A model generated the notes under the pieces. The model was given only the letters and a program-made list of their open reading frames with translations, was not told the DNA's origin and did no database searches. From NCBI RefSeq assembly GCF_000143415.4, contig NW_003314277.1, positions 321,183 to 385,182 on the forward strand: DNA of 64,000 nt. The letters run 5' to 3'. The DNA comes from Selaginella moellendorffii (Eukaryota; Plantae; Lycopodiophyta). The stretch's first letter is position 1, and every line of letters begins with the position of its first letter. This document shows positions 1-61,930 of the stretch, piece by piece. The position numbers were made by a program, and so were the translations under genes.

Positions 1-3000
1 ACACTTACCATTCGTCCGTGGAGCCGAGCATCGAAATCTATCTCACAAAGACCGACGTCACTGGCACTGGAGCAGCTGCCACGCTGCTGCTCTTGAACAA
101 CGAAGTTGGTTTCTCGGAAAAGAATATAGAGTCCTTGTGCGGCGCTGGTCAGTCCACAAAGAAAGGAAAGAAATCTCAAGGATACATTGGCGAGAAAGGT
201 GAGATAATTCTTTCTTACCTCTCCCTCTCTAGCCGTGGTAACGTCTCTTGCTCGTACAGGAATTGGGTTTAAGAGCGTTTTTCTCGTCACCAAGCAGCCG
301 TATATAATCACCAATGGCTTTCGTATTCGTTTCGACGAAGAGCCCCACAACGAGGCCAAGCTCGGGTATATTGTCCCGGAATGGGTCGACCGTCCTACAG
401 ACGCTGTGCTGCAGAAGGTCTGTAGCAAGACCGAGCTTCCTGCAACGGTGATCATCCTTCCCTTGCGTCAGGAAAAGATTTCGGAGGTGGCAAAACAGCT
501 TACTCAAATCCCAGCGGAGACGCTCCTCTTCTTATCGAAGATACGCATGCTCTCCATCTACGATCAGCAGTCGCGGCCTCCCACGGAACTGGTTCTCTCC
601 AGATCTGTGGAGATGACAACGTCAAAGAATGGAAGCGTGGAAACGAGCACAACTTTTCTGACAGCTAGTAACGGACGGAATGGCACTCAGCACAGCAACT
701 ACTACATGTTTAAGCAGACTTTGAAAGTACCTGAGGAGGCCAAGGTTGAAAAGCGAAAAGATGTCGATAGCTGGACGATCACTCTAGCCTTTCCGGTGGA
801 TGATCGTATCTCGAGCAGCTGCAGCATTGGCGATATCTTCTCGTTCCTGCCTTCCGATATCCACTCGGGCCTGCCGTTTCTTATCAACTCGGACTTTTTG
901 CTCGTTTCCTCCCGTGAGACGCTCCTCTTTGACAGCCCCTGGAACCAGGGGATCTTTCGCTGTGTTCCCGAGGTTTTCTACAACGCCTTCGAGCTTCTCC
1001 TCAACACCACGGCGTTTGGACTGCAGAGTATACCGTCAGTAGCACGCATGGCAATGTACAAGTACGTACCTGTGACTGCTTGCCGCAACTCGTACCTCGA
1101 GAGAGTCCGCAACGATATCTTGTCCAAGCTGAAGGACAACAACGTCATTCTTTGCGCCTCGGACGTCGGCCGTGCACCACCGAGCGGGCAGCTTTGCAAG
1201 CCTGCTCTTGCGAGAAAAATCGCCCCCAGCTTCCGAGAGCTCCTCAAAGCCGCACCGAAGTGTCCCAGGTTCTTGCGAGGAAGTCCCTGGTTCTTGCGAC
1301 GAAGTTCCTCGTACATAGTGGACAGCACGCTGCAGGAGAACTACGGCTCGGTGCTGAGACTCCTGGGAGTCCCAGATATGAGCAACGATGAATATCACCA
1401 AAGCCTCGACTCTGAAGACTGGATGAGATCGCTCCCCGACGATGCATATGTCAAGCTGCTGGTGTTCCTGTCCTCCAAGTCGTCAACTTTGAGATCCCTC
1501 AGGTTTCTCAAGTATCGAGGCTCCGATGGTCGACTCCAGTTGGCAAGCATGGATGATCTCGCGCGAAACGATGGCAGATCCATGTACTGGGATTCTGGTC
1601 ACAGAGCTACCGCTTGGCTCGCTGGTTGGACAGAGGTGTTTCAACGTTGGCTAACTTTCAACTTCGTTCCATCGGCCTGCGCTGCAAAAATCCGGCAGCA
1701 CTCGGTGTTAGAGAACTGGTTGGAGAGAACCCCCTTCAGCGTGAGCGAACTGACAGCATGCTCACTCGCTCGTCAGGTTCTTGGAGCAGTCACTGCGAAC
1801 TCCTCAAATGCAAAGCTTGCTGTTCTAGCGATGCACTTCCTGTTCGACCTGTACAGAAACGACCGCAGCTCGTACACATCCATCAGCAACCAAAAGCGTA
1901 ATGAACCAATCGTCGAGAATGACGGAGCCGTGAGTCCCTATGTTGCGAGTTATGTTTCAACGCGTCCATTGTTGCTACCGGCGGCTTGTGGAGCGAAGTG
2001 GCCGCTCTTGCTCCCGTCTGACGCGTGGAGACGCGGCGTTCGAAAATTGTCAGAAGAGTATATGGAGTCAGCAACGATCGATCTCTCCGACTCCGACGTG
2101 CGAACCGAGTTTGTGAATTTTCTGAAGGAGCAGTTCCTGGCTACGGACATCCCCGCCTTTGATCCGGTGGACGAGGCCCTTCCTCCGCATTATGTTGGTA
2201 ACGTCGCAGCGAGCTCGTTGTTACTGAAGTGGATTAAATCCAGGCACTGCAATGCACCCGCTTTCACTTCCAGTATTAAGACTACCAAGTGGTTGAAGAC
2301 GAGCCACGGATACTGCTGCCCAACCGTTGCATTCCTGCCGGTGCCTGAGCTGCTTAAAGTCTTGAAAGTCGAGGACGTTCCGTTCGTGGACAAGGACTGG
2401 ATGCCATTGGAGGAGTATAAGAACGAGTTCCGAAGCCTGGGAGTGGCTTGCGAGCCCGGCATGGGATATGCAACTGTCCTCCGCTGTCTCGGCAATATGC
2501 AGAAGCTTCCTGCTCGGCAAGTCGACACGGCTAAAGTGGTCAGATTTTATCAGTACCTCTCCCGCTGCGCTGAACAAGAATTATGGAGGGACGTTGACGT
2601 GATCTGGGTGCCGCAGAGCGAAGGCCGTGCAGCAACCTGGAAGAAAAAGGAAGAATGCGTCATTCACGACGTTGAGGGCTTGTTTGAAGAACTCGGTGTT
2701 GTACCTCTGGATAGCTGCTACGAGCGGGTCATGCAAGACATCCTTCAGAAGAGGTTTGATGTTTGTGAGAAGCCTTCGATCATCAAGTTCTGCGAGCTCT
2801 GGCAGAGGTGGTCGTCTAAAGGAAAAGATGTCGAGGTACAAAAGGCTTACACAGTGTGGCGTGAGCTGGTGGAGGCGAAGCTAGTCTCGTCACGACCAAC
2901 TTCGACGCCGTATCTGAAAGTTTTCCGCGCGAGCAGCTGCGTTCCTTCAATACCAGCCTGCGAAAAGAACGCAGCCACCGTGAAGCTTCTTCCGCCTGCA

Positions 3001-4518
3001 AAGACGGTCATGGTTGATCAGCTAGAGCTGGAACATCTCTTTAGAAACACTAATCCTCGTCCGTGGGTGGCGTGGTATCCAGCCAGCCAGGAGATCAACA
3101 CGCAGGAGCTATATGAAGTCTATTCCTGGCTGGGGGTCAAGACAATCTCCGAATGTGCTGAATCGGAGACGGACACGAGCTGCATGAGCCTCTCACTCGG
3201 AAGGAAACTGGTCTGGGACGAAGGATACATCCACCTGGGACTGTTTAGAGCAATACTCGGGTATCTGGCTCTATCACTCTCCGTCAAGGAGCGACAAACC
3301 ATAGTGCAGGAACTGCTGCGTCTAAAGGAGGTGGAACTCGAAACGGGCCTGAAAGTTCACTGGACTCTTCGCGTTGGAGACACTACACGTCACGCGGTCT
3401 CGGAGAGGATGCTCTACTGGAACAGGGAGAGGCAGGAACTAGCCTATGTCGACGAGGGGCAAAGGAAGAAGAGGAACACAGAGTTTGGGACCGAGTTCGC
3501 GAGGATCATAGCGGAGGGTCTGCTTTTCCACCACCGGGACTTGATTCCAGGCATGGAGAGGCATCTGAGCATGCTGGCATTCTCTAAGTTCGACGTCATG
3601 GAGGTGGACAACATGCTCATCAAGCACAACATGCGGCTCTATAGCGAGGACGAGACGTTTCTAAAGACCGGGGTGATTGTGGATCCATCTAAAGCTGACG
3701 CTGAGAAGAACTTACATGGTGGTGAAGCAGTCGCAGAGATGGAACCGTTTGTGCTACCGGATGTTCCTGAAACGGAGGAAGATCAGCTGGAGAGAGATTC
3801 AAGAATTTCCGAACGTCCAGCAGACTCGAGATCCACCACCATTGTCGTCGCTCCAAGTTCTTACTCTCCAGCTTTTGTCGCTGCTACTCCGAGACCACCA
3901 CCTCTGGACAACCGGAAATACCTCCTGGAGCAAGCTTTCCAAGTCTTATCATCGCTGGACGAGATCAAAGACGAGGCGTGGACGATGGAGCTGCCAGACG
4001 AGGTTTTTAACTCAGAGAAGATCAGCGCGTGGCGAGAGACGTACCTTCCAACAGTTCGTCGCCTTTTGGACTATCCACCCGAGGAAGGTTACCTCAAGCC
4101 CGGGATGAGGACTGGCATGTCTCTAGACAAGATGCTCACAGCGGCATTTCTCGACGCTGGAAACTTTCCGGGAGTGAAAGGATCGAGCCACCATCACTTG
4201 AGCGTCGTTGGAGCAGCGTGCCTCAACCTGTGCCTGGCGATGGAGCTCGTCAAGCTAGATGACAATCACCACGGCGGAGTAAACGGCGCTTACAAGCTGA
4301 CGAACACCTCCCTGCTCGCGGCGTGCTTCCATGCCTGTGGGCTGGACGAATCTGTGCTGCGCAGCTCGAATTCGGCAGCCGTGAGCGACCTCGTGGGGGC
4401 GAGCGTCGCGAGAGCCCTACTGGCTGTGGGGTTTTGCGCCTACGACGATGGATTGGGAGAAGTGAGGCGGATCTACCAGGAGGTGTTCCTCGCCGCCCTC
4501 GGCGATGCTCTCGGCTGA
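1..4518 (+). CDS. Sacsin/NO VEIN-like GHKL ATPase protein with C-terminal RNase III-like domain, copy 1. 5' exon lies outside the window; visible exons 1-198 and 260-4518
   Basis: Exon 2 has NNEVGF and YIGEK. A GT..AG intron at 199-259 joins IGEKG|IGFKSVF, the sacsin/NOV HATPase signature. FSFLP..SGLPFLINSDFLLVSSRE..WNQ follows. Exon 3 is open to TGA at 4518. Confidence 0.88.
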
Positions 4519-4822: not shown

Positions 4823-7800
4823 CTTAGAGGCGTTCATTTTTGTGAAGAAGGTGATAGGCAAAGAACAAAGGCAAATGCCTGAGGGGCTGGCACTTCCAAG
4901 ATGCTAGCCCGGTCATGGAATAAAGTGATTCTTGCATGAAACAGAGTGGCTCAGAATGCCTGTGCCGTAGCTGAATGGCCCTGCGACTTTGCTGCTACCA
5001 TCCTGGATCATGTTCCCGGTGTTGTCGAAAGTTAAAGCTGGAAGAAGCACAGATTATTGCTGAGCTAGATAATCTTAAATTATGAGAACTACCAATTTTA
5101 GTTTGCGCGTGGTTAGTATAGTCAAAATTAGAGTTTTTTTATTGTTAGATTTATTCTAAATTGATAATTCCTTTGCAGAAACCAGCTTCACAATATTTTA
5201 TGGTTATTTTCAGAATAAAAAACAAAAGCAATATATGATAGCAATTCTATGATTTCTAAAAATCAATAATTTTACTCCATTATTTATATTAAATCAGATT
5301 TTCTATTTATAGAGATTATATTATTAAAAATTATTATATGTATATATGTTTTTATCTTCAGAATAAAAAACTAAAGCAATATAGAGATTATAGAGCTGTA
5401 TGTGACATTTTAAATAAAATTTGAATAAATTCGAGAATTATTTAATCCAGGTATATTCCTGGTTCAGAATATAATGCAATCAATGATAGTCCATTATTTG
5501 TGCAGCTAAATCAATAATTATATGTAGAAAAATTAAAGAAATTAATATAAATTAAAAAAATAAATTAAAAAAATATTTATCTTTTAGGAATGCCCAAATA
5601 GTTTAGCTCCTTCCTATGTGATCACGATTCATATTTTGCACTTTATTTTTTCACTTAAAGCTCTGAATTGTTTAAGCTTTTCTTGATATAATATATGTGT
5701 TTAGGCATATCCAAAAACATTTGTTCTAGATTTTTTTCTAATAAAGAACAAAACCTTCCATTGTAACTATTGATGTTTGCCCATAACCACTTTTATGGAA
5801 AAAGAATGTTAATTTACACACACACACGCATATATATTTTCTTTAATTTAATATTAATTTATATTTAACATTACTTTTCCCTAATTGATTTTAAGGTAAG
5901 AGTGTTTTTAACTCCTCCTTTAACCAATGGAAAAATATGATAGAAAAATCAACAATTGCATCTAGAATTTAGCCTTTATTTTTTAGTTCTTTATTTGATG
6001 CTCACAATAGTTATTGAAGAGCACTCTTTAGGCAAAGGATCAAAACAATTTAATCAACAAAGTAGTGATGGGTTAAAACATTATGCAATTCCTATTGATC
6101 AATAGGAATTATACAATATTTCTCAGTGCATGTCTAGAGCTTAGCATAATGTTATGAGATGTCACCTTTTCTACTTCTCGTTGCTCGTCTTTCAACTCCA
6201 CTTCCTATGGGTGATGGTCTTATTTTAATGAAGGTTGATGATGCTGTTGTTCGAGTCCAAGGACAAGGGCAAGGCCGTGATCATGGCCGTGATGTTCGTT
6301 GCTGGGCGTGTGATGAAGTTGGTCACACTTATTGGCATTGTCGGCATTTTCTAGATTGGCAGCCACCATTTCCTGGGTGGAGACCTTGGCATCAACAACG
6401 TCTTGTTGGTGCTGTTGTAGTGGAAGGTCTAGACATTGAGATGCATCCGGGAAACAAGGAGTCGGGCGAGTAACGGAGGGACCTTGCACAAATAAGTCAG
6501 TGACCCCTTCATCTATCTTTCGGGAGTATCATCAAGGGGTTCACTTGGCACTAGTTCATCTAATGTTTCCTTTCCAAGCTCATTTTATTAATAACCAATC
6601 TTCTATTATTCTCTCCGTGTTGGTTGATACAAGTTCAAGTTTATCTTTTATTGCTCGACCCGTTGCCACATGTTGTTATCTACACTTGCGTCGTGCAGTG
6701 AAGCTAGTTTTCATTCTTTATGGCAATAGCTATACACATGCATGTGCACGGGATGAGGCAAATTTAGTTATGCGTGTGTGTGATCTTGAGTTGGGTTGCA
6801 ATTATTGCAAGTGGTGCTAAGTCAAGCTTTTGACCTCATCCTTGGTATGGATTGGTTGCAACGCAATCATGCCAAGTGTGACTTTAAGGCTTTTCCCCTT
6901 TGTTTCATACTTCCTTATATTTCATCCACTCCTCTCACTTTCGAACCTCTTCGTCCCTCTATTTCTATCTCTGCTTCTATTACTTTTGTCCTCCTACTCC
7001 TTCCTTCTATGTCTCCATCTTGTTCTACTCTTCCCTTTTCCAATCCCTTTGACAATCTTTGTGTTTCAATGGTTGATTGGTTCATAAAGGAGTATTTTGA
7101 TCTTTTTGAATTTGACCTATCATCTGGGGCCAAAATTGCCACACGTCATCCTATTCTAATCGGGGATGCGCGTCCAATCAAGGTTCTTGTTCGTCGTCAG
7201 TCACCCAAATAGATCAAGATTTTACATACAAACGTAAAAGAGAAGGGTGTTATTCAAAAGTCGCAAAGTCCTTGGGCATGTGAACCTCATCTTATGACGA
7301 AGCCTGATGGGAGTATTTGTTTCTGCATCAACTATCATCCATTAAATGAAGTGACAATCCCAAATGTATACCCTCTTCCTCACACTGTTGATCTCTTGGA
7401 TCATTTGGGGTGAAGTTGTTAGTTCACCAAGCTAGATCTTGCTTATGGGTACTGGCAAGTACTGATGGCTGAAAAACACATTCCTAAGACTACTTCTTGT
7501 ACACTATTTGGTTTGTACAAGTTTTTGGTGATGCTATTTGGTTTGCACAATGCTCCAGCAACTTTCCAGCGGATGATAGACGAGGTTCTTTGCGATATGC
7601 CAGAGGTGACTGTTGACTTCATTAATGATGTCCTAATTCACTCGGAGGGGACGTGAAAAGAGCACATTCGTGATGTTTGTAAAGTGTTGGATTGGTTACA
7701 AGGGCATTGGCTTAAAGCTGAAGCAGTCAAAGTGCATATTTATGCCCAAGGACACGATTTATCTTGGGTACCGTATTTCTCGTGAGGGTTTGCAAGTTGA

Positions 7801-8105: not shown

Positions 8106-9579
8106 TGTAAGCGATTAATTTTTCCATTCTACTTTAGTCACTTAGCCATACCTCTGACCACTTGGAGGAGTCTCATTCACAACCTCCATAAGTTCAATTC
8201 AGGACTTGGGGCTTGCTTGCCCCGAGAATGGCATTCATGCCACTCAACCTTTGCACTTGGTCCAAGTGCTCCACGTGTCCGATCCCAAGATCGACACCCC
8301 AAGGTACCACCAACATATCAGCCCGTTATGCTAGGCCATGCCTATTCACCTTGGTCACATCAATGGTCCAACACCATCTGTATTGTAATCCTGTCTCTCC
8401 AAGACTGGGCCATCCGTCCATGAGTGGTCAGCCCAAATCCACTCCTTAACATCCTTAGGATGCCCACAGATATGGGGAATAGCCTTCCCCAGTATCTCCT
8501 TTCCGGTCCTCACTAAGTCCCTTTCTGTTCATGGCTGTGCTCGCCAACACTGCCATTGGGGCAAGGCTCACAGGCCCGACCATTAAGTCCCGTGGTCCTC
8601 TGGGACTTCTTCACCATGTGACTATGTCCTTGGTCACCACACCAGAGGGCTACTCCTCTTCCTTTCCACAGTCTGGGACTTTGGGACACCATTTCGGAAC
8701 ACCGTGGCCCTATGCAGGCCTCCTAGGTACTCTCCCCGCCTTCCGCCTTTGGGTGCTCTAGCCATGGGCTTAGAGCGAGGTTCCGTTGAGCCACGCCTGG
8801 TATCCAAGTAGGTAGTGCCACCCACATTTGGACTGAGAGCATTGACCTGGGGGAACTAGAGTCGGCTCTTGAACACTTCACCAAGCTACCCCGCTTGTCG
8901 ATCTATATTCACTCTAGTCTTGGACTTCCCAATGGTCAGCTCATCACTCAACATTGGGTATGGCCTTCCTGAGCCAAATGGCCTTTCTTGGACAAACTGG
9001 CTCCACTAGGCTCCAACCCCCACACTCTCCCTACTATACTTTTGGAACCCCCCGCAGCCCCCCCACCCCCCCTTGGGGGACGATTGCTTTGGGCTTTCAC
9101 CCAACTACCCGTATTAGTATTCGGACTCGGACTCGAGCTCGAACTCGGACTCGGACTCGGTCTCGGTCTTGGTCTCGGTCTCGGTCTCAGTCTTGGTTCC
9201 GGTTCCACCTTGGACTCCATCTCGGATCCATCTTGAGTCCGTCTCGGATTCCATCTCGGACTCCATCTCGGGTCCATCTCGGACTCCTTCTCGGGTCCAT
9301 CTCGGATCCATCTCGGACTCCATCTCGGGTCCATCTCGGACTCCATCTCGAGTCCATCTCGGATCCATCTCGGACTCCATCTCGGGTCCATCTCGAACTC
9401 CATCTTGGGTCCGTCTTACACTCCATCTCAGGTCCATCTTGGACTCCATCTCGGGTCCATCTCAGACTCCACTTCAGACTCCACTTCGGACTCCAACTCG
9501 GGTCCATCTCAGACTCCATCTCAGGTCCATCTTGAACTCCACTTCGGACTCCAACTTGGGTCCATCTCGGACACTTACA
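8106..9579 (-). mobile_element. Solo LTR related to chromovirus D, inserted in reverse inside the family C 5' LTR
   Basis: Starts tgtaagcgattaatttttcc, the reverse complement of the D LTR end ggaaaaatttatggcttaca. Shares the ttccaaaagtatagtaggg and gtgaaagcccaaag blocks and a tandem-repeat tract. Ends cttaca. No clear TSD. Confidence 0.7.
9118..9570. repeat. 6/12-bp tandem array (ctcgga, ctcggactccat) inside the solo LTR
   Basis: Directly visible. It produces low-complexity shadow ORFs. Confidence 0.9.
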
Positions 9580-11984
9580 CGTGTCATGTGTTGGTCCTTT
9601 TGGGTCCCTTTTTGGAGCCTCGCTTATTGCTCGTTTCATGCTCATTCCTCGAGCACTTTGTTGGGAGCTCCACTCCCGCTCTCAACCTTTCAAGTCGGAG
9701 CTTTTAGTCCAAACGTGTTACGCTCGTTTGGTTTTCGCTTCGGCCACCACCACATGGCACCCTTCCGGCTCCACTTTGGGGCCTAGGGATTTTGTGTCTC
9801 ACAGTTGGATGACCTCTTGGGAAGTCTAAATTTATGAGTTTACATTTGGTATCAAAGCAAGTCTCGAGTCTGACTCTATTGGTTGGCTAAGGGAATCACA
9901 CCACATGTTAATTGACATCTAGCAAAGGTCCAATATGCTTTGGCTGAGCTTGACCCAAGGAGTAGGATGTCAAGCGAGCAGGGCTCTTGGGAAAGCTACA
10001 ACTCTTAGCTTCCATTCACGAGGGCGTGAACTTGCAGGGAAGCATAGTGGATTGTAAGCAACCAAAGGGAATGATTCGAGAGATAATCTATAAGGGTTCA
10101 AATATAAAGGGAAAGGGCCCATGAGCAAGAGTGCACCTCTTTTTCAATCAAATATTGGGATATTTGGGGTTAAGTGTTCTTGGGTTTGAATAGTATTCTC
10201 CCGAGAAGTCCAAATTTAGAAGCTTACAAAGTCATCAACGTCCTCTTTCATCTGGTCTTTGGATTGTGAGTCGGCATTCATGGATCTCAAAGAGCTCTTG
10301 ATGACTCCTCCAGTTTTGACATATTCTGACTACACTCGACCTTTTATTTTATGCGTGGATGCTTTTGATATTTGTTTTGGAGGTGTGTTGATGCAAGAGA
10401 GCCCAAGTGTACCTGGTCAACGCCATCCTATTGCATATATAAGCCGTACATTACAACTAACGGAGGTGAACTACTCCACGACAAAGAAGGAATGTTTAGC
10501 AGCAGTCTGGGGTTTCGAGAAACTTGATACATATCTACATGGTTCTCGGAGGTTATTTGAAGGTGATCATGCTGCCATTACTTCATTATTGAAGAAAAGA
10601 ACCTTGTTGGTTGTACTACTCGGTGGGCTTTGAATCTTCAGATATATGATTTTGATGTTGTTCATCACCCCGAAAGTTTTATGGGTAATGTTGATGCCCT
10701 TTCTCAAGCTCCTTTTCCTTTTCCACTCTCTTCTCATATTTTTGATGAGCCTGTTGTTCCAGCATCTGTGGATTTTCTAAATGAGGATTCTGTGCCGTCA
10801 ACGGTTGCTGTACTTGATGTTTAATGTCCACAAGGTGCAAAGCAAGATCTACCTTCTCTTGACAAAGTTCACGAGGCTCAAAAGCTTCAGCCATGGATTC
10901 AAAGGCTTCAAGATGGGTTTAAGAATCTTGCATCATTTGTTGATGACTTGCCATTCTGGCATTTACAATGTCAATATTGCCTTCAAGATGGCTTTCTTTA
11001 TTTTTTGGGGACGAATCCTGGTAATCCTTTATGGGTGGTGGTGCCTTCAATCTTTATTCCACGGTTTCTTCATACATACCATGATTCTTTTGTTCTATGT
11101 GGGAATATGGGACATTCTCATGTGACCAAGAAGTTGCACAGGTCTTTCTATTGGCCGAACATGTGACATGATATTATCTGGTATGTGCATAGTTGCATTT
11201 AATGCCAAGTTCGTAATACTCTCCCTCGTGCTATGGAAGGACAGTTGGAGTCAATTGCAGTTTCCCATCCATTTGAGTTAGTGGCATTTGATCTTATAGG
11301 ACTTTTTCCACGATCGACTGCTGGCAATGAGTATGTTATTATTGCTTTTGACTATTTGACTCATTGGGTAGAAATTGGTGCTCTTGCTAGTGCCTTTACA
11401 ACCGCTATTGAATACTTCCTCTTTAATCGAGTGGTGTTCTAGCATTCTTGTCTGGAGCAGATTCTTTTAGATAATGGTCCCGCATTTATGGCTGAAGCAT
11501 TTCATGTTTTGACGTCTCGATTGGGGATATGCCACATTTTCATAAGTGTTTATCATCTATAGTCAGATGGTTTGGTGGAACGGCTCATTTGAACATTCAA
11601 AGGAATAATTGCGAAATATGTGAACTTTCAACATTCAGATTGGGATGGTTATTTGCCATCTGTTCGGTATACATATGTTACAGAGGTGTAAAGTTATGTT
11701 GGTGCTTCACAATATAAACTTTTACATGATCATAATCCAATATTACCAACGGAGCTAGGTTTGCCTTCACAATTGCCAGGAGCTGCCGATGCTAGGTCCT
11801 AAGATCAATATTTGACGAGCATTCTTCCACTTGTTCGAGCAGAGTCTGCCAAACACTTAGGCCACGTACAAGTGGGACAACAACAGAGCTACAATGCCCA
11901 CCATCGTCCACTCTTAGTGTTAATCCGTTTTCCCCATCTTACGGTACGTGGTTTATCTAAGGGGTTCCTTGCTCAGTGGAAAGG

Positions 11985-14062: not shown

Positions 14063-17000
14063 ATGGGTTTATGGCAAAGAGGATACTTGTCACGAACATG
14101 AAAGATATGGATGCGTTCCATGCCTTCATATCAGGCTTGCAAACCTGGGCTTGCGGTGAAGTGATGCGTTGGAACCAACCAACTACAAGGAAGCATTGGA
14201 TGCGGCCATCAAGGTGCATTTCAACGATATCTGTGAAAGGGGAACACGTTGGGGTTGGGGTCTATGTTTAGCAAAAGGGCTAAATCAAGGGGAACGTATA
14301 GCAAAGGGAAATTCAAGAAGAGTTTCTCTAAGAATGAGTCCTCGAGGTTCCAGAAAGGCAAATCCAGTGGCCAGCGAGCAAGTACGTAGGGGAGTCAAGC
14401 AAAAAAAAACAAACCCACGGATAAGAAGGTCAAGTCAGTTAGCAGCGTGGGAAACAATATATGTTACAACTATGGTGAAGCAGAACACTTTTCAAGGGAA
14501 TGTCCTTACCCGAAGAAGGCCAAAGCCAATATGGTTATTAAATCGGGTGAAATCCAAACTAAGGTATGTGATCTAGTCCCTAATTCAAAGTTACTTATTA
14601 CACGAGTAACTTTGGTAGAGAGTCGTTCGTAACATCTACTAACCCTCCGAGGGAAGCTCGGAGGTAGCTTTGTTAAGATCCTTATTGACACGGGTGCTTC
14701 GGATAATTTTGTGGTTGCAGACATAGTCCGGCAAGCTGGACTAATGGTGCAGCGGCTGGGCAAACCAAGGACTATAGAGTTTATTCAAGGTAGCTAAAGC
14801 ACCAATGAGGTACTTCAACAAGCGAAAGTCGAACTAAGGACATGGAAAGTAGACATGGATTTCACCATGTTGGACATGGCGGGATTTGACGTGATCTTCG
14901 GGATGGATTAGTTCAATCGGTTTATGGTAGCCCTGCATGGACAAGGTAGGAACCTTGTGGTAGTAGCGAATGCCTAAGGAAGAAGATCCAAGGTGGAGGC
15001 CCATGATCTAAAGGTAGGGCAATTGGCAAGGTCAAAGATTCCTGTTTAAACCTGGTGTCCACGAGAGGACAACTCACTAAAGGAACCAAGGCAGCATTTC
15101 TGTGCTTACTCTCGGTGAAGAGTGACAAAAAGATAGAAACGAAAGAAGTACCTTTAGTGATCCAGCGGGTGTTGAACCAATTCCAGGATACCATGCCAGA
15201 GGAGCTTGCCCCCCACACGACCGATAGAACATAAGATTGAGCTGATCGAGGGTGCTGAGGCGGTGGTCTGTCCCCCCTATCATTTGAACGAAAAAAAACT
15301 CGAGGAACTTAAGTGCCAGTTGGTGGACAAAAGGTATATTAGGTTGAGCAAGTCGCCGTATAGGGCACCAGTGTTATTTGTGAAAAAGAAAGATGGATTT
15401 ATGCGCATGTGCATAGACTACCAGTTGCTAAGAAGAACAAATACCCTTTGCCAAGGATTGAGGACCTGTTCAATAGGTTGGGAAAGGCAAAATACTTCTC
15501 GAGGATTGACCTAATGTCAAGATACTACTAGATCAGGGTAACAAAGGAAAATGTCGAGAAGACAATCTGTCGAACAAGGTATGGGAGCTTTGAGTTTCTA
15601 GTGATCCCCTTTGGGCTATGCAATGTGCCGGCAACATTTTCGGCATTGATGAACCACATTTTTATACCCTATCTGAATCACTTTGTCGTCTATCTCGTCT
15701 ATATTGGCGACATCCTGATCTATAGTGAAATGTTAAAGGAGCATATTGAACACTTGACGAAGGTGTTTGAGAAACTAAGGGAACACCAGCTGTATGTTAA
15801 AGAGAGCAAATGTGACTTTGCTTAACAAAAGGTAAAGTTTTTTGGGTATATGGTGGGCAAAGATGGGCTCAAGGTGGACCCTAAAAAGGTCCAAGCAACC
15901 TAGGATTGGGAGTGACTATCGAATGTACACGAGTTAAGGGCATTTTTAGGGCTATGCAACTACTATCGAAAGTTTATCAGACACTATTCGAAAATAACCC
16001 TACCCTTAACAGACCTAACGGGAAAAGAGAAGATGGTATGAACAGTGGAATGCGAGGCGGCATTTATCCACCTCAAATGGAAGTTGAGGAAGGCTCCCAT
16101 GTTGGCGTTACCAGACTTTGGTAAAGGCTTTGAGGTAGAAACGGATATTTCAGACTTTGCGTTTGGTGCAATTTTGAAGCAAGACAACCATCCAGTAGCG
16201 TTCTTCTCGAAGAAGTTGGACAAAGCTCAACAGAAGTGGCTTGCCCACGAGAAGGAATTGTTTGCGGTGGTCAAGGTGCTCAAGGAGTGGCGACACTACT
16301 TTGGGAGACACTTCAAAGTTTACACAGATAATGTGGCAACGAAACACTTCTTGTCATAGCCCGACCTGAGAGGGAAACAGGGTCGGTGGGCCAATGCTTT
16401 GGCCGAGTTTGATTGCAAGATTCTGTACAAGCTTGGGAAGAGCAACATCGTGGCAGATGCGCTAAGTCGAAAAGCGAGCTTGAAGTTGGTGATATCCAGC
16501 ACGACAGCAACCTTTTGGGATGATGTGTGGATAGCATATGAGAACAATGGTTTAGCACAAGAAATGTTGCTGAGGAATCTAGAGGCATGAGAAGCTCACT
16601 AAAAAGATGAGCTGCCAACGAAAGAGAAAACAGGCTATGCAGAATGCAATAGACTCATCTATTACAAACAAACGAGGGTGTATGTTCCAAAAGGGGAACT
16701 AAGGAAGGTAGCTTTAAAAGAGTGTCATAATGGACCTTTTGCAGGACACGGTAGAGTGCCCAAGACGATAGGCTTACTCAAGAGGAAGTATCACTGGCCA
16801 GATATGGCTAAGGATGTCCAAGACTATGTAAAAACATGTTTAACATGTCAATAGGTCAAAGCCATAACTAAGGTTAGTGGGGGCTTGTTACAAAGCATCC
16901 CAATTCCAGATCGTCCATAGAAATATCTTACGATGAACTTCATCACGGGACTCCCCCTAAGTGAGGGGTTTGATGCGATATTCGTGATGGTGGACCAATT

Positions 17001-20800: not shown

Positions 20801-21730
20801 AAATCGAGGAAAATCCAGCTGACGCTTCTAGGATGCGGGGGCGTCGGGCGCCAGCTCCTCCGCCACATTGTCTCCACTCGTAAACTACACGAGATTTCTC
20901 TCTTTGAATCAAATGCCCAGGGCTTGCGAGTCGCTGTGATGGCTGTAGTGGATTCCAAGTCCATCTTTGCGAAGGAAAAGAACCCGGTACATGTCTGTTT
21001 TTATTTGCCTTTTCTTTAAACGATGAAAGCTCAGCTGGATTGAATGCGCGAGCCGTTCGCGAAGAAGATTGATGGAACTCTAGCAGCTGCGATAAGAACC
21101 ATCACAGAAGAAACTGGTAAAACTTTCCTTTCAGCTTTTTTGATGGATGATCATACAACTTTTTTTTCTTGTTTATCCTACAGGTCGTCCTTTGGTTGTA
21201 GCTGACTGTACCGCGAGTATAAAAATTGGACAAGCACTTGCAGAGATGGCGGACTTGAATTGCTGCATTGTTCTTGCGAACAAGAAGCCTCTCACCAGCT
21301 CGTTTGTAAGATCGTTCTTTTCTTCTTTCTTCTTTTTTCCTTGACCCATGGCTGCAGAAAGTTTACGATAGGATTGCAGCACTGAATTGACGTTATCGCT
21401 GTGAATCAACAGTTGAGCAAGAACTATTTGTACGTACATTTTACGAACATTTCTCAAGCAGGTCGGTGCTGCTCTGCCAGTCATAGCAACTTTGAACCGT
21501 CTGCTAAATTCCGGAGATTCGATCAAGAAAATTGTTAGTGCTCTCAGTGGTTTGTCCTTTCATTCTCCTAAAAATTTGCCACTTCTAACGTCCTTTGTCA
21601 GGCACTCTCGGCTTTGTAATGAGTCGGTTGGAGTATGGTGAATCGTTTAGTGATATTGTGAGACAAGCGAAAGAGCTTGGTTACACCGAGCCAGGTAGCT
21701 ATCTTTCTTTTCTATTTTTCATGTAGTTTC
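20801..21730 (+). pseudogene. Homoserine dehydrogenase pseudogene, truncated at both ends
   Basis: LLGCGGVGRQLL, VVADCTAS, VLANKKPL, VGAALPVIATL, GTLGFVM, LGYTEP. In-frame stop near 21387. The last ~650 bp present in the 29734-31374 copy are deleted. Confidence 0.85.
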
Positions 21731-22106
21731 AGGTATCGGACTCTAGAACACGCACTAACACCGAACATCGTGGGATGCAGCCGACATTGTACCATGGACA
21801 GGGATTGGAATAAAACAGACGTAAAGACAGAATCACATCTGCCGCCCATATTTACTTTAGGAGGGACTTTAGGCTCTAATGAAATACTGAGTTGCCTCAA
21901 ATAAAGAATTCAGCGAATAAAGCCTCAAGCGTGATCGCAAGTCACACCATCTATATAAAAAATGCCAGTGAACCGTAATGAAAGCGGGCGGGAGGCGGTT
22001 TAGGAGATAAAATGCTGTGATCACAAAATCGAACTTTTTAATAAGCCTTCCTATTCTTGCTTCATAGAAGGGAGAGAACGTAGGAGACAGATTTCTGCAC
22101 AGCGAA

Positions 22107-25100
22107 ATGTCGTCCCAGCGAATGTTTATCGAGCGCCTGCGTCGCGAGCTCTTTGGAATCGGCCAGTCCGGTCCCAATCCTCTCGCTCTCATGCTCCAGG
22201 AGACGATCAGGCTCCTCTCGGCCGAGCTCTACCAGAAGGACATCCATTTCCTGTCCGAACTCCTCCAGGTACTTTGCTCGAACTTGGTTCTGTCCCTGAC
22301 AAACATGAGCGTCTTAGAACGCTGAGGACAACACTTACCATTCGTCCGTGGAGCCGAGCATCGAAATCTATCTCACAAAGACCGACGTAACTGGCACTGG
22401 AGCAGCTGCCACGCTGCTGCTCTTGAACAACGAAGTTGGTTTCTCGGAAAAGAATATAGAGTCCTTGTGCGCCGCTGGTCAGTCCACAAAGAAAGGAAAG
22501 AAGTCTCAAGGATACATTGGCGAGAAAGGTGAGATAATTCTTTCTTACCTCTCCTCTCTAGCCGTGGTAACGTCTCTTGCTCGTACAGGAATTGGGTTTA
22601 AGAGCGTTTTTCTCGTCACCAAGCAGCCGTATATAATCAACAATGGCTTTCGTATTCGTTTCAACGAAGAGCCCCACAACGAGGCCAAGCTCGGGTATAT
22701 TGTCCCGGAATGGGTCGACTGTCCTACAGACGCTGTGCTGCAGAAGGTCTGTAGCAAGGTGGTCTTCCTGCAACGGTGATCATCCTTCCCTTACGTCAGG
22801 AAAAGATTTCGGAGGTGGCAAAGCAGCTTACTCAAATCCCAGCGGAGACGCTCCTCTTCCTATCGAAGATACGCATGCTCTCCATCTACGATCAGCAGTC
22901 GCGGCCTCCCACGGAACTGGTTCTCTCCAGATCTGTGGAGATGACAACGTCAAAGAATGGAAGCGTGGAAACGAGCACAACTTTTCTCACAGCTAGTAAC
23001 GGACGGAATGGCACTCAGCACAGCAACTACTACATGTTTAAGCAGACTTTGAAAGTACCTGAGGAGGCCAAGGTTGAAAAGCGAAAAGATGTCGATAGCT
23101 GGATGATCACTCTAGCCTTTCCGGTGGATGATCGTATCTCGAGCAGCTGCAGCATTGGCGATATCTTCTCGTTCCTGCCTTCCGATATCCACTCGGGCCT
23201 GCCGTTTCTTATCAACTCGGACTTTTTGCTCGTTTCCTCCCGTGCGACGCTCCTCTTTGACAGCTCCTGGAACCAGGGGATCTTTCGCTGTGTTCCCGAG
23301 GTTTTCTACAACGCCTTCGAGCTTCTCCTCAACACCACGGCGTTTGGACTGCAGAGTATACTGTCAGTAGCACGCATGGCAATGTACAAGTACGTACCTG
23401 TGAATGTTTGCCGCAACTCGTACCTCGAGAGAGTCCGCAACGATATCTTGTCCAAGCTGAAGGACAACAACGTCATTCTTTGCGCCTCGGACGTCGGCCG
23501 TGCACCACCGAGCGGGCAGCTTTGCAAGCCTGCTCTTGCGAGAAAAATCGCCCCCAGCTTCCGAGAGCTCCTCAAAGCCGCACCGAAGTGTCCCAGGTTC
23601 TTGCGAGGAAGTCCCTCGTACATAGTGGACAGCACGCTGCAGGAGAGCTACGTCTCGGTGCTGAGACTCCTGGGAGTCCCAGATATGAGCAACGATGAAT
23701 ATCACCAAAGCCTCGACTCTGAAGACTGGATGAGATCGCTCCCCGACGATGCATATGTCAAGCTGCTGGTGTTCCTGTCCTCCAAGTCGTCAACTTTGAG
23801 ATCCCTCAAGTTTCTCAAGTATCGAGGCTCCGATGGTCGACTTCAGTTGGCAAGCATGGATGATCTCGCGCGAAACGATGGCAGATCCATATACTGGGAT
23901 TCTGGTCATAGAGCTACCGCTTGGCTCGCTGGTTGGACAGAGGTGTTTCAACGTTGGCTAACTTTCAACTTCGTTCCATCGGCCTGCGCTGCAAAAATCC
24001 GGCAGCACTCGGTGTTAGAGAACTGGTTGGAGAGAACCCCCTTCAGCGTGAGCGAACTGACAGCATGCTCACTCGCTCGTCAGGTTCTTCGAGCAGTCAC
24101 TGCGAACTCCTCAGATGCAAAGCTTGCTGTTCTAGCGATGCACTTCCTGTTCGACCTGTACAGAAACGACCGCAGCTCGTACACATCCATCAGCAACCAA
24201 AAGCGTAATGTACCAATCGTCGAGAATGACGGAGCTGTGAGTCCTTATGGTGCGAGTTATGTTTCAACGCGTCCATTGTTGCTACCGGCGGCTTGTGGAG
24301 CGAAGTGGCCGCTCTTGCTCCCGTCTGATGTGTGGAGACGCGGCGTTCGAAAATTGTCAGAAGAGTATATGGAGTCAGCAACGGTCGATCTCTCCGACCC
24401 CGACGTGCGAACCGAGTTTGTGAATTTTCTGAAGGAGCAGTTCCTGGCTACGGACATCCCCGCCTTTGATCCGGTGAACGAGGCCCTTCCTCCGCATTAT
24501 GTTGGTAACGTCGCAGCGAGCTCGTTGTTACTGAAGTGGATTAAATCCAGGCACTGCAATGCACCCGCTTTCGCTTCCAGTATTAAGAATACCAAGTGGT
24601 TGAAGACGAGACACGGATACTGCTGCCCAACCGTTGCATTCCTGCCGGTGCAAGAGCTGCTTAAAGTCTTGAAAGTCGAGGACGTTCCGTTCNNNNNNNN
24701 NNNNNNNNNNNNNNNNNNNNNNNNNNNNNNNNNNNNNNNNNNNNNNNNNNNNNNNNNNNNNNNNNNNNNNNNNNNNNNNNNNNNNNNNNNNNNNNNNNNN
24801 NNNNNNNNNNNNNNNNNNNNNNNNNNNNNNNNNNNNNNNNNNNNNNNNNNNNNNNNNNNNNNNNNNNNNNNNNNNNNNNNNNNNNNNNNNNNNNNNNNNN
24901 NNNNNNNNNNNNNNNNNNNNNNNNNNNNNNNNNNNNNNNNNNNNNNNNNNNNNNNNNNNNNNNNNNNNNNNNNNNNNNNNNNNNNNNNNNNNNNNNNNNN
25001 NNNNNNNNNNNNNNNNNNNNNNNNNNNNNNNNNNNNNNNNNNNNNNNNNNNNNNNNNNNNNNNNNNNNNNNNNNNNNNNNNNNNNNNNNNNNNNNNNNNN

Positions 25101-26765
25101 NNNNNNNNNNNNNNNNNNNNNNNNNNNNNNNNNNNNNTCGAGGTACAAAAGGCTTACACAGTGTGGCGTGAGCTGGTGGAGGCGAAACTAGTCTCGTCAC
25201 GACCAACTTCGACGCTGTATCTGAAAGCTTTCCGCGCGAGCAGCTGCGTTCCTTCAATACCAGCCTGCGAAAAGAACGCAGCCACCGTCAAGCTTCTTCC
25301 GCCTGCAAAGACGGTCATGGTTGATCAGCTAGAGCTGGAACGTCTCTTTGGAAACACTAATCCTCGTCCGTGGGTGGCGTGGTATCCAGCCAGCCAGGAG
25401 ATCAACACGCAGGAGCTATATAAAGTCTACTCCTGGCTGGGGGTCAAGACAATCTCCGAATGTGCTGAATCGGAGACGAACACGAGCTGCATGAGCCTCT
25501 CACTCGGAAGGAAACTGGTTTGGGACAAACACTCTCCGTCAAGGAGCGACAAACCATAGTGCAGGAACTGCTGCGTCTAAAGGAGGTGGAACTCGAAACG
25601 AGCCTGAAAGTTCACTGGACTCTTCGCGTTGGAGACACTACACGTCACGCGGTCTCGGAGAGGATGCTCTACTGGAACAGGGAGAGGCAGGAACTAGCCT
25701 ATGTCGACGAGGGGCAAAGGAAGAAGAGGAACACAGAGTTTGGGACCGAGTTCGCGAGGATCATAGCGGAGGGTCTGCTTTTCCACCACCGGTACTTGAT
25801 TCCAGGCATGGAGAGGCATCTGAGCATGCTGGCATTCTCTAAGTTCGACGTCATGGAGGTGGACAACATGCTCATCAAGCACAACATGCGGCTCTATAGC
25901 GAGGACGAGACGTTTCTAAAGACCAGGGTGATTGTGGATCCATCTAAAGCTGACGCTGAGAAGAACTTACATGGCGGTGAAGCAGTCGCAGAGATGGAAC
26001 CGTTTGTGCTACCGGATGTTCCTGAAACGGAGGAAGATCAGTTGGAGAGAGATTCAAGCATTTCCAAACCTCCAGCAGACTCGAGACCGACCACCATTGT
26101 CGTCGCTTCAAGTTCTTACTCTCCAGCTTTTGTCGCTGCTACTCCGAGACCACCACCTCTGGACAATCGGAAATACCTCCTGGAGCAAGCTTTCCAAGTC
26201 TTATCATCGCTGGACGAGATCAAAGACGAGGCGTGGACGATGGAGCTGCCAGACGAGGTTTTTTAACTGAGAGATGATCAGCGTGTGGCGAGAGACGTAC
26301 CTTCCAACAGTTCGGCGCCTTTTGGACTATCCACCCGAGGAAGGTTACCTCAAGCCCGGGATGAGAACTGGCATCTCTCTGGACAAGATGCTCATAGCGG
26401 CATTTCTCGACTTTCCGGGAGTGAAAGGATCGAGCCACCATCACTTGAGCGTCGTTGGAGCAGCGTGCCTCAACCTGTGCCTGGCGATGGAGCTCGTCAA
26501 GCTAGATGACAATCACCACGCCGGAGTAAACGGCGGTTACAAGCTGACGAACACCTCCCTGCTCGCGGCGTGCTTCCATGCCTGTGGGCTGGATGAATCT
26601 GTGCTGCGCAGCTCGAATTCGGCAGCCGTGAGCGACCTCGTGGCGGCGAGCGTCGCGAGAGCCCTACTGGCTGTGGGGTTTTGCGCCTACGACGATGGAT
26701 TGGGAGAAGTGAGGCGGATCTACCAGGAGGTGTTCCTCGCCGCCCTCGGCGATGATCTCGGCTGA
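22107..26765 (+). pseudogene. Sacsin/NOV-like ATPase with RNase III-like domain, copy 2 (pseudogene)
   Basis: Exons 22107-22268, 22318-22528 and 22589-26765; splicing gives ELLQ|NAEDN. Frameshifts near 22760, 25527 (deletion of about 50 bp) and 26262. Contains the N run. Confidence 0.88.
24693..25137. other. N run of 445 nt (gap or masked sequence)
   Basis: Directly visible. Confidence 0.99.
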
Positions 26766-29733: not shown

Positions 29734-31374
29734 AAATCGAGGAAAATCCAGCTGACGCTTCTAGGATGCGGGGGCGTCGGGCGCCAGCTCCTCCGCCACA
29801 TTGTCTCCACTCGTAAACTACACCAGATTTCTCTCTTTGAATCAAATGCCCAGGGCTTGCGAGTCGCTGTGATGGCTGTAGTGGATTCCAAATCCATCTT
29901 TTTGGGTGAGAAAAACGAAGAACTGGACGACGCTGCTCTTCTGGAAATTTGTCTTGCGAAGGAAAAGAACAATCAAATGCCCGGTACATGTCTGTTTTTA
30001 TTTGCCTTTTCTTTAAACGATGAAAGCTCAGCTGGATTGAATGCGCGAGCCGTTCGCGAAGAAGATTTTGATGCAACTCTAGCAGCTGCGATAAGAACCA
30101 TCACAGAAGAAACTGGTAAAACTTTCCTTTGAGCTTTTTTGATGGATGATCATACAACTTTTTTTCTTGTTTATCCTATGGTTGTAGCTGACTGTACCGC
30201 GAGTATAAAAATTGGACAAGCACTTGCAGAGATGGCGGACTTGGATTGCTGCATTGTTCTTGCGAACAAGAAGCCTCTCACCAGCTCGTTTGTAAGATCG
30301 TTCTTTTTTTGTTTCTTCTTTCTTCCTTGACCCATGGCCGCAGAAAGTTTACGATAGGATTGCGGCACTGAATCGACGTTATCGCTGTGAATCAACAGTT
30401 GAGCAAAAACTATTTGTACGTACATTTTACAAACATTTCTCAAGCAGGTCGGTGCTGCTATGCCAGTCATAGCAACTTTGAACCGTCTGCTAAATTCCGG
30501 AGATTCGATCAAGAAAATTGTTGGTGCTCTCAGTGGTTTGTCCTTTCATTCTCATAAAAAATTTGCCACTTCTAACGTCCTTCTAACGTTCTAACCTTTG
30601 TCAGGCACTCTTGGCTTTGTAATGAGTCGGTTGGAGTATGGTGAATCGTTTAGTGATATTGTGAGACAAGCGAAAGAGCTTGGTTACACCGAGCCAGGTA
30701 GCTATCTTTCTTCATGTAGTTTATTCTTACGCTTTCAGACCCTCGTGACGATCTTGGCGGTATGGACGTAGCAAGGAAGGTGAAACCACTTGCTACTATC
30801 CCGTGAATGCAACATGACTTCTTTCATTTTTTATATAATGGCTCGACTAATGGGATGGAGAATAAACTTAGAGGATGTGGAGGTACTCACTCTCTTTGGT
30901 TGGATTCCTCTTAGTGACGTGCTGCTTAAAGGTTGAGTGCTTACATCCGCCAAGTCTGGCTCCCAAACTGATGAGCACCACGCAATTTCTAAACGAAGGA
31001 CTAGCCGAACTCGACTTGCCAATGAGAAACCGTGTGAAAGAAGCAGCTGCTAGGGGTTGTGTTCTACGATATGTAAAACTTTCAGTAAGTCAATCCGCCT
31101 GAGCTTACCAAAAACCTGTCCTTTGCTTACAGTTGCAAAGTGGGAATTGTAGAGCAGCCTCAGCAGTCCGCTCTCGGTCAGCTGCATGGAAGCGATAATC
31201 TGGTAATTGTATAGAGCTTGTGCGTTTCCTGAAACTTTGTTCTTGCAGGTCGAGATTTTCACGCGCTGTTATTCGACTTCGCCTCTTGTTATTAAGGGAG
31301 CCGGGGCAGGCAATGATACTACAGCCGCTGGTGTGTTAGCGGACGTTTTGGACCTCCAAGACTATTTTGGCTAG
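29734..31374 (+). pseudogene. Stand-alone homoserine dehydrogenase, multi-exon, lacking a start codon (probable pseudogene)
   Basis: Rossmann GCGGVG, ANKKPL, CEST-VGA, GYTEPDPRDDLGGMDVARK, and C-terminal GAGAGNDTTAAGVLADVLDLQDYFG*. No ATG before the Rossmann motif. A splice acceptor near 30178 is deleted relative to the 21 kb copy. Confidence 0.85.
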
Positions 31375-31730
31375 GTATCGGACTCCAGAACACGCACTAA
31401 CACCGAACATCGTGGGATGCAGCCGACATTGTACCATGGACAGGGATTGGAATAAAACAGACGTAAAGACAGAATCACATCTGCCGCCCATATTTACTTT
31501 GGGAGGGACTTTAGGCTCTAATGGAATACTGAGTTGGCCTCAAATAAAGAATTCAGCGAATAAAGCCTCAAGCGTGATCGCAAGTCACACCATCTATATA
31601 AAAAATGCCAGTGAACCGTAATGAAAGCGGGCGGGAGGCGGTTTAGGAGATAAAACACTTTTTAATAAGCCTTCCTATGCTTGCTTCATATAAGGGAGAG
31701 AACGTAGGAGACACATTTCTGCACAGCGAA

Positions 31731-34700: not shown

Positions 34701-36446
34701 CCTTCGATCATCAAGTTCTGCGAGCTCTGGCACAGGTGGTCGTCTAAAGGAAAAGATGTCGAGGTACAAAAGGCTTACACAGTGTGGCGTGAGCTGGTGG
34801 AGGCGAAGCTAGTCTCGTCACGACCAACTTCGACGCCGTATCTGAAAGTTTTCCGCGCGAGCAGCTGCGTTCCTTCAATACCAGCCTGCGAAAAGAACGC
34901 AGCCACCGTCAAGCTTCTTCCACCTGCAAAGACGGTCATGGTTGATCAGCTAGAGCTGGAACATCTCTTTGGAAACACTAATCCTCGTCCGTGGGTGGCG
35001 TGGTATCCAACCAGCCAGGAGATCAAAACGCAGGAGCTATATTAAGTCTACTCCTGGCTGGGGGTCAAGACAATCTCTGAATGTGCTGAATCGGAGACGG
35101 ACACGAGCTGCATGAGCCTCTCACTCGGAAGGAAACTGGTTTGGGACGAAGGATACATCCACCTGGGACTGCTTAGAGCAATACTCGGGTATCTGGCTCT
35201 ATCACTCTCCGTCAAGGAGCGACAAACCATATTGCAGGAACTGCTGCGTCTAAAGGAGGTGGAACTCGAAACGGGCCTGAAAGTTCACTGGACTCTTCGC
35301 GTTGGAGACACTACGCGCCACGCGGTCTCGGAGAGGATGCTCTACTGGAACAGAGAGAGGCAGGAACTAGCCTATGTCGACGAGGAGCAAAGGAAGAAGA
35401 GGAACACAGAGTTTGGGACCGAGTTCGCGAGGACCATAGCGGAGGGTCTGCTTTTCCACCACCGGGACTTGATTCCAGGCATGGAGAGGCATCTGAGCAT
35501 GCTGGCATTCTCTAAGTTCGACGTCATGGAGGTGGACAACATGCTCATCAAGCACAACATGCGGCTCTATAGCGAGGACGAGACGTTTCTAAAGACCGGG
35601 GTGATTGTGGATCCATCTAAAGCTGACGCTGAGAAGAACTTACATGGTGGTGAAGCAGTCGCAGAGATGGAACCGTTTGTGCTACCGGATGTTCCTGAAA
35701 CGGAGGAAGATCAGCTGGAGAGAGATTCAAGAATTTCCGAACGTCCAGCAGACTCGAGATCCACCACCATTGTCGTCGCTTCAAGTTCTTACTCGCCAGC
35801 TTTTGCCGCTGCTACTCCGAGACCACCACCTCTGGACAATCGGAAATACCTCCTGGAGCAAGCTTTCCAAGTCTTGTCATCGCTGGACGAGATCAAAGAC
35901 GAGACGTGGACGATGGAGCTGCCAGACGAGGTTTTCAACTCAGAGAAGATCAGCGCGTGGCGAGAGACGTACCTTCCAACAGTTCGTCGCCTTTTGGACT
36001 ATCCCCCTGAGGAAGGCTACCTCAAGCCCGGGATGAGGACTGGCATCTCTCTGGACAAGATGCTTACAGCGGCATTTCTCGACGCTGGAAACTTTCCGGG
36101 AGTGAAAGGATCAAGCCACCATCACTTGAGCTTCGTTGGAGCAGCGTGCCTCAACCTGTGCCTGGCGATGGAGCTCGTCAAGCTAGATGACAATCACCAC
36201 GGCGGGGTAAACGGCGCTTACAAGCTGACGAACACCTCCCTGCTCGCGGCGTGCTTCCATGCCTGTGGGCTGGATGAATCTGTGCTGCGCAGCTCGAATT
36301 CAGCAGCCATGAGCGACCTCGTGGCGGCGAGCGTCGCGAGAGCCCTACTGGCTGTGGGGTTTTGCGCCTACGACGATGGATTGGGAGAAGTGAGGCGGAT
36401 CTACCAGGAGGTGTTCCTCGCCGCCCTCGGCGATGCTCTCGGCTGA
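31731..36446 (+). pseudogene. Sacsin/NOV-like ATPase with RNase III-like domain, copy 3 (single nonsense codon)
   Basis: Exons 31731-31892, 31942-32152 and 32209-36446. GAA>TAA at 35043-35045; otherwise in frame. Confidence 0.88.
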
Positions 36447-61768: not shown

Positions 61769-61779
61769 TATATATATAC

Positions 61780-61869
<90 letters not shown>

Positions 61870-61930
61870 GTATGTATGCATAACATACATATATACATGC
61901 ACACATACATACATACATACATATATATAA
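61769..61930. repeat. Compound microsatellite (TACA)n(TA)n(TGTA)n
   Basis: Directly visible. Confidence 0.97.

Follow-up and report, generated by a model that had tools for sequence, protein, structure and literature searches.

Bacterial antiphage Tiamat, plant NO VEIN (NOV) and sacsin have been described as one family of GHL ATPases with an interchangeable C-terminal effector, which usually sits on a disordered linker and is predicted to dimerise (10.64898/2026.09.30.754977). Tiamat and NO VEIN in the strict sense are defined by a C-terminal NOV_C (DUF3883) PD-(D/E)xK nuclease domain; in Tiamat this nuclease is carried on a disordered linker and is predicted to provide the constitutive dimer contact at the C-terminus (10.64898/2026.09.30.754977). 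Another plant relative, Arabidopsis AT3G48770, is a single-sacsin-repeat protein with an added N-terminal BED finger and a conserved β-sheet motif at its end (10.64898/2026.09.30.755639). Here we describe a gene of the lycophyte Selaginella moellendorffii that encodes an ATPase of the AT3G48770 type with an additional C-terminal domain, which very probably derives from ribonuclease III (RNase III) and has lost its catalytic site. The gene lies in a stretch of 64,000 nucleotides (contig NW_003314277.1, positions 321,183 to 385,182, forward strand), hereafter called the window, and all coordinates are those of the window unless stated otherwise.

The window holds three tandem copies of the gene. 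Copy 1, on the + strand, is the only one with an intact reading frame, its first ~60 codons lying before the window start. Exon 1 (residues 1-54), which contains the N-box ELLQNAEDN, is located upstream of the window, and the window begins at about residue 60. Exon 2 (3..200) encodes part of the sacsin-type GHKL ATPase domain (…NNEVGF…GYIGEKG) and was located by tblastn with residues 60-125 of the database protein P0001, at 98% identity, and by translation. A short intron of ~46 nt (201..246) separates …GEKG from IGFKSVF; it appears as a gap between the tblastn segments and is found at the same position in a homologous gene on contig L001, which is described below. The remainder is a single large exon (247-4518, tblastn of P0001), inside an open reading frame (ORF) that runs from 235 to 4518 without interruption, encodes 1427 amino acids and has no stop over 4.28 kb.

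The exon can be divided into three parts. The body (247..3663) covers the rest of the ATPase and the sacsin-repeat/solenoid region and extends to the usual C-terminus of the family, YSEDETFL; it was assigned by collinear homology to 1688 plant Sacsin/Nov-domain proteins, and its last stretch reads NMRLYSEDETFL (3628-3663). It is followed by a linker of ~110 residues (3664..3999), which by direct reading is acidic and rich in Pro and Ser. The linker is probably disordered; the segment from ~3910 (NRKYLLEQ…) was already helical in a first, low-confidence model. The third part (4000..4515) is the putative RNase III-derived, catalytically dead domain, assigned by sequence searches and an AlphaFold2 (AF2) model. 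It is helical, comprises 160-170 residues and reaches from helix α-1 (WRETYLPTVRRLLDY) to the C-terminus, with the stop codon at 4516-4518. Read directly from the sequence, it contains YLPTVRRLLDY (from 4042), MLTAAFLD (4132), SHHHLSVVGA (4186), KLTNTSLL (4294), VGASVARALL (4393) and RRIYQEVF (4465). All peptides quoted in the original prediction, which was made by a reader who saw the sequence alone, fall in one + strand frame inside the ORF.

The closest database proteins are S. moellendorffii LOC112349098 (XP_024538629.1, 1539 residues; P0001) and its paralogues, and copy 1 matches the gene model P0009 (1543 residues). The RefSeq model XP_024538629.1 takes in the C-terminal tail. In full-length P0001 the SACS domain PF25794 was detected at 46.5 bits against a Pfam cut-off of 32.8. 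Both P0001 and the copies in the window show the N-box (ExxxNxxD; ELLQNAEDN) and the GxGFxS box (GEKGIGFKSVF), the N-box of copy 1 being outside the window.

A search with the whole protein gave 1688 homologues from plants, which carry the names 'Sacsin/Nov domain-containing' or 'like AT3G48770'; the best outside Selaginella had E=2e-280. The protein thus belongs to the AT3G48770-like land-plant branch of the sacsin/NO VEIN/Tiamat GHKL (GHL) ATPases. It shares with these relatives the N-terminal sacsin-type GHKL ATPase, a solenoid body of ~1100 residues and a closing region up to an EDE.FL motif, which aligns in 115 of the 129 proteins compared. The proteins are collinear; in the best local alignments, identity to the listed homologues from seed plants and Sphagnum is 33-40%. 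Angiosperm and Sphagnum homologues end within ~10-20 residues after EDE.FL, in agreement with the claim of the original prediction that plant proteins of this type terminate near the motif, whereas the Selaginella protein continues with the linker and the RNase III-derived domain. It has no BED finger. The RNase III family PF00636 is absent from all of the 120 best homologues out of 1688, although further fusion-bearing members at ~30% identity could be hidden among the others.

A Pfam search did not find NOV_C on the ORF or on P0001. The body places the protein in the AT3G48770-like, Tiamat-like family, but because this domain is missing it is not a Tiamat or NOV protein in the strict sense. 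With bacterial Tiamat and plant NO VEIN, which have the order GHKL ATPase - DUF3684 - PD-(D/E)xK nuclease, it has in common the N-terminal GHL ATPase, a long helical-repeat middle and a disordered linker leading to a C-terminal nuclease-type domain that is expected to dimerise (10.64898/2026.09.30.754977). The terminal domain of the Selaginella protein, however, appears to be derived from RNase III, a double-stranded RNA (dsRNA) nuclease fold, and is not a PD-(D/E)xK/NOV_C DNase. The Tiamat preprint lists many effector swaps and mentions RNase III 0 times (10.64898/2026.09.30.754977). RNase III is mentioned in neither of the two 2026 preprints (10.64898/2026.09.30.754977, 10.64898/2026.09.30.755639), and the combination was absent from the further literature searched. 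RNase III is an effector swap that has not previously been reported in the sacsin/NOV/Tiamat family.

Evidence for the origin of the tail came from sequence comparisons at several levels. An exhaustive phmmer search with the translation of 3910-4515 against 1.84 billion representative proteins returned three proteins only: the Selaginella cluster itself, a bacterial repeat protein (P0004) and a protein from another plant (P0005, E=7e-11). P0004, which has 3007 residues, was rejected as a repeat or composition artefact, as just a 40-residue stretch was matched, ten times. By BLASTP the Selaginella tail matched the tail of P0005 with E=7e-23, and the core alone (4120-4515) matched the Pfam-verified RNase III domain of P0005 with E=2e-17 and 33% identity over 141 residues. 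A profile built from the Selaginella and P0005 tails (alignment A1) matched the RNase III structure 2a11 in the PDB at 2.6e-5 and also matched Dicers and Drosha. In a single comparison, a profile made of bacterial and Dicer RNase III sequences, with neither Selaginella nor P0005 included, aligned with the tail in register over 105 residues (E=1e-4). Among the nearest clusters in protein-language-model features, 21/30 were RNase III-like. Judged from these alignments, the tail has significant homology to RNase III over the whole domain, and the resemblance is not a matter of chance.

P0005 is a continuous ORF of 1902 residues (5.7 kb) on an 18.6-kb Logan contig (L001) of run SRR33208241. It is collinear with P0001: the body is 31% identical over 1194 residues, then follows a linker, and then the tail with 32% identity. 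Exons upstream of the P0005 ORF encode the ATPase N-terminus, and both intron positions are common to the two genes. In a maximum-likelihood tree of the body, P0005 groups with Selaginella, apart from Sphagnum and the seed plants, with support of 89/82, which we consider moderate evidence, as both branches are long. The two proteins agree in family, in the order of parts and in two intron positions and are sisters in the tree; the RNase III domain and the linker differ. The P0005 tail is canonical: PF00636 was detected at 8e-19 (68.7 bits against a cut-off of 27) and PF14622 at 3e-16, PDB matches include Drosha, Mycobacterium tuberculosis RNase III, DCL4 and Dicer-2, down to 6e-19, and the catalytic motifs QRLEFLGDA and AADVFEA are both intact. 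The linker measures ~530 residues in P0005 as against ~110 in Selaginella, and the two are not alignable. On the same contig, positions 14974-16227 encode a plant-type β-propeller protein (KIB1-4/At3g26010-like, weak matches), which is consistent with a plant origin of the contig.

The fusion thus occurs in S. moellendorffii and at least one further plant, and in P0005 the catalytic signature is complete. This contradicts the proposal that the fusion is lineage-specific. A word-based search for further fusion proteins with the P0005 tail was unsuccessful, Dicers being the only other long proteins recovered. In current databases the GHKL ATPase-RNase III combination is rare, with Selaginella and one contig as its representatives.

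In Aquifex RNase III four acids, E40, D44, D107 and E110, bind two Mg2+ ions. The corresponding positions were examined in A1 and in A4, an alignment of 44 sequences that has the Selaginella domain at its head and was deepened with 80 fetched bacterial rnc loci. At 4192..4215 the degenerate signature HHLSVVGA takes the place of (E/Q)RLEFLGD; the first Glu of the signature is replaced by Ser (4201-4203) and its Asp by Ala (4213-4215). The second catalytic pair, in helix α-7, is lost as well, with SVAR replacing DxxE at 4402..4413, that is Asp to Ser at 4402-4404 and Glu to Arg at 4411-4413. In terms of alignment columns, the near-invariant R, E, F, L and D of the signature have become H, S, V, V and A in all Selaginella copies, and D..E of α-7 has become S..R. 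Of the signature, the invariant L and G persist, as does the hydrophobic pattern of both helices. As aligned, all four metal-binding acids are replaced and the ERLEFLGD signature is absent in every Selaginella copy, just as had been proposed for the catalytic acids. Taken with the continuous ORF, the homology and the structural model described next, this also supports the central claim of the original prediction, that a single ORF joins a sacsin/NOV-type GHKL ATPase to an RNase III domain with a degenerate catalytic site. We have little doubt that the tail is RNase III-derived, catalytically dead and fused to the ATPase.

The fold of the tail was predicted with AF2. The model obtained from A4 had a predicted local distance difference test score (pLDDT) of 79 and a predicted template modelling score (pTM) of 0.79. 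With Foldseek the best 50 PDB matches all belonged to the RNase III family. An exhaustive VIA-align comparison gave 31 RNase III-family matches with Z scores of 5.5-15.3, and from there on the matches were to unrelated chains, at 3.6 or below. The top match was Arabidopsis RTL4/NFD2 (9h4a_B; Z 15.3, root-mean-square deviation 2.5 Å, 135/139 residues), followed by Campylobacter rnc (Z 14.9) and E. coli RNase III (13.8), with Dicer, Drosha and RNase III-like proteins of the mitoribosome next. The model, which the original prediction had suggested as a check on the C-terminus, thus matches RNase III structures only. Because A4 contained RNase III sequences, the result shows that the tail sequence is compatible with the all-α RNase III fold, and it is not an independent discovery of that fold.

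The structural matches allow a comparison with other RNase III proteins. RTL4/NFD2, which heads the structural matches, is like the tail an RNase III domain without a dsRNA-binding domain (dsRBD), but it stands alone and is not fused to an ATPase. The sequence searches gave no match to 9h4a, and its Z score is within 1 unit of that of bacterial rnc, so that it ties with the Campylobacter enzyme. The modelled likeness to NFD2 is at the level of fold only, and a specific kinship is no more than possible. Non-catalytic RNase III folds are known to persist as RNA- or protein-binding modules in mL44-type proteins and plant RNC1. Mitoribosomal chains were among the structural matches (3j7y_c, Z 12.2; 9hlz_99, Z 12.7), although partners and contexts of the mL44-type proteins and RNC1 differ from those of the Selaginella protein. 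Dicer and DCL proteins also combine an NTPase and RNase III chemistry in one polypeptide, but they have a helicase, PAZ, two RNase III domains that form an intramolecular dimer, and a dsRBD. In comparison with the Dicers P0011 and P0012, the only domains detected here were SACS/HATPase (on P0001) and one RNase III domain (on P0005). A GHKL ATPase with a single RNase III domain would imply an intermolecular dimer.

The C-terminal coding sequence is present in 3/3 tandem copies. Copy 2 (22107-26765, +; RNase III-like part 26274-26765) is a probable pseudogene. Its tblastn segments lie in different frames, residues ~833-983 (~150 residues) are deleted, and a stop or frameshift occurs just before the last domain (FN*EMISVWRETY). 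The gene models P0002 and P0003 bridge this damage with invented introns, and P0003 is even joined to upstream homoserine-dehydrogenase exons. Copy 3 (31731-36446, +; RNase III-like part ~35964-36446) is full length with a premature stop at 35043-35045, where the sequence reads ELY*VYSW and the other copies have K. Its annotated product, P0008, ends at this stop after 1069 residues, before the RNase III-like tail. The ORF following the stop (35112-36446, 444 residues) is annotated as a protein of its own, P0010, on another scaffold. That scaffold may be an allelic copy, in which case the stop of copy 3 is probably real. The statement that the domain is retained in all three copies consequently applies to the DNA and does not extend to the products, with copies 2 and 3 broken upstream of the domain and P0008 ending at its stop.

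Copies 1 and 3 differ in the domain by 9 synonymous and 4 non-synonymous changes, corresponding to a ratio of non-synonymous to synonymous rates (dN/dS) of 0.14 (binomial p=0.0009 against neutrality). These counts are low, and the reading frame of copy 3 is already broken before the domain. For the same pair dN/dS was 0.23 in the linker, with very few changes, and 0.49 in the body. These values are suggestive, not conclusive, of selective constraint on the RNase III-derived domain.

The explanation that we favour, with a probability of about 0.62, is that the protein is an ATPase with a dead RNase III domain, that the effector was active in an ancestor, and that the domain now serves in dimerisation and possibly in docking on dsRNA. 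Several results weigh against it. No Pfam family, PF00636 and PF14622 included, was found for the Selaginella tail at E values up to 1, an NCBIfam search of the tail gave nothing relevant, and phmmer against the PDB gave no RNase III match. The link to RNase III runs mainly through one homologue, P0005. An AF2 prediction from a 5-sequence family alignment was unusable (pLDDT 42), and the later fold match is not independent of the homology call, its alignment having been seeded with RNase III sequences. No dsRBD follows the domain. Copies 2 and 3 are both damaged, and the array may be decaying. For the 14 sequencing runs that contain parts of the stretch, an RNA origin is a guess. The silence of Pfam and of the PDB search and the poor first model are what would be expected if the similarity to RNase III were spurious and the tail an unrelated helical domain. 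We regard this as hardly credible, given the library-wide E value of 7e-11, the pairwise value of 2e-17 to a domain which Pfam itself recognises as RNase III at 8e-19, the in-register alignment with the independent bacterial and Dicer profile, and the predominance of RNase III among the language-model neighbours. It is also very improbable that the fusion is an artefact of annotation or of the ORF, with the long frame arising by coincidence and the tail belonging to a distinct gene downstream or to a segment that is untranslated or removed by splicing. The separate annotation of the 444-residue ORF behind the copy 3 stop speaks for this, but copy 1 is free of stops throughout, XP_024538629.1 includes the tail, and the order body, linker and RNase III is repeated in a single 5.7-kb ORF on an independent contig of another organism; the apparent purifying selection, moreover, runs on through linker and tail.

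If the domain is real, it might still be a functionless relic, in which the nuclease was inactivated and the tail is decaying neutrally together with the whole tandem array in S. moellendorffii. The loss of all catalytic acids, the frameshifts and the deletion in copy 2, the premature stop in copy 3 and the lack of such a tail in angiosperm and Sphagnum homologues all fit a relic. We nevertheless consider it unlikely: the reading frame of the tail is open in 3/3 copies, the substitutions between copies 1 and 3 depart from neutrality, the identity of the tail to P0005 (33%) is not below that of the body (31%), and the signature and α-7 helices keep their hydrophobic core positions. The opposite alternative, that the tail is still a nuclease or another enzyme with a non-canonical active site such as the HHH cluster beside the former signature, draws on the unusual SHHHLS run, which in every copy occupies precisely the former metal site. 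The Tiamat preprint notes folds of nuclease type whose action does not depend on canonical residues (10.64898/2026.09.30.754977). With all four Mg2+-binding acids replaced, one of them by Arg, such an enzyme is scarcely to be expected. We are not aware of any earlier example of an RNase III that relies on His.

For a dead RNase III domain on an ATPase the following mechanism can be proposed. GHL ATPases are dimeric clamps with a constitutive contact at the C-terminus, for which the linker-tethered nuclease has been proposed in Tiamat, and RNase III domains function as dimers. Given these dimers and the C-terminal contact of Tiamat, the ancestral plant protein was probably an ATP-cycled GHL clamp with a dsRNA-cutting RNase III effector, and P0005 may still be one. 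Because RNase III domains work as dimers, the Selaginella tail most likely keeps two chains joined at the C-terminus, and it could possibly dock on dsRNA without cleavage. The Selaginella protein would then be a non-cleaving dsRNA-binding or scaffolding ATPase, a sensor or decoy, and not a nuclease. By analogy with these systems a dimerising or dsRNA-binding role of the tail is conceivable, with the odds somewhat short of even.

The link between sacsin/NOV/Tiamat ATPases and antiviral defence is recent, and these proteins have been presented as platforms whose C-terminal effectors can be exchanged. An effector of the RNase III type would point to dsRNA, which is characteristic of RNA-virus replication and of silencing pathways, as a target of the plant branch. 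It would also mean that the large uncharacterised AT3G48770-like plant family once carried a nuclease, which offers a hint at the function of the family. The intact version in P0005 and the dead version in Selaginella form a natural pair in which the coupling between ATPase clamp and effector could be studied. A more far-reaching idea, which we think rather improbable, is that early vascular plants had, and some still have, a Dicer-independent ATP-gated RNase III immune nuclease, of which the dead Selaginella derivative is a dsRNA sensor, decoy or regulator and certain gymnosperm tails are relics. If true, a Tiamat-like GHL clamp would have exchanged its DNase for a dsRNA-cutting RNase III, in a fusion that predates the lycophyte-euphyllophyte split.

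Tails of ~190 residues after EDE.FL were seen in P0017 from Ginkgo (1290-1446), P0060 from Cryptomeria (1285-1437) and P0023 (1295-1443; protein coordinates in each case). By eye they contain the motifs GWEK…, …GDA.LK.L… and …LK..AGAA…, which resemble a further-degenerated RNase III. Alignment of the gymnosperm tails by hhalign was weak but in register, with a probability of 2.9% against A1 and of 14% (P=0.002) against A4. Pfam, the PDB, protein-language-model features and the A4 hidden Markov model gave no RNase III signal for them. The resemblance, if real, would make the fusion older than the split between lycophytes and seed plants.

Homoserine-dehydrogenase-like exons (PF00742) lie upstream of copies 2 and 3, at 21044-21820 and 30061-31462, and the tandem duplication unit therefore includes this neighbour. 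Retrotransposon remains were seen between the copies, and ORFs at 44160-45806 (+) match reverse transcriptase-RNase H and integrase domains. Positions 6159-7212 (+) are perhaps also of retrotransposon origin, as judged by eye from an ILGMDWL-type protease-like motif near 6800. Further neighbours, at 36969-37802 (+), 50913-52397 (-) and 52787-53872 (-), encode two pentatricopeptide-repeat (PPR) proteins and an RNA recognition motif (RRM) protein. The region 8948-9786 consists of low-complexity repeats (runs of the GL, PR and SR dipeptide type) that give long spurious ORFs on both strands. From 58000 to 64000 the G+C content falls sharply to 25-31%, compared with ~52% in the coding parts.

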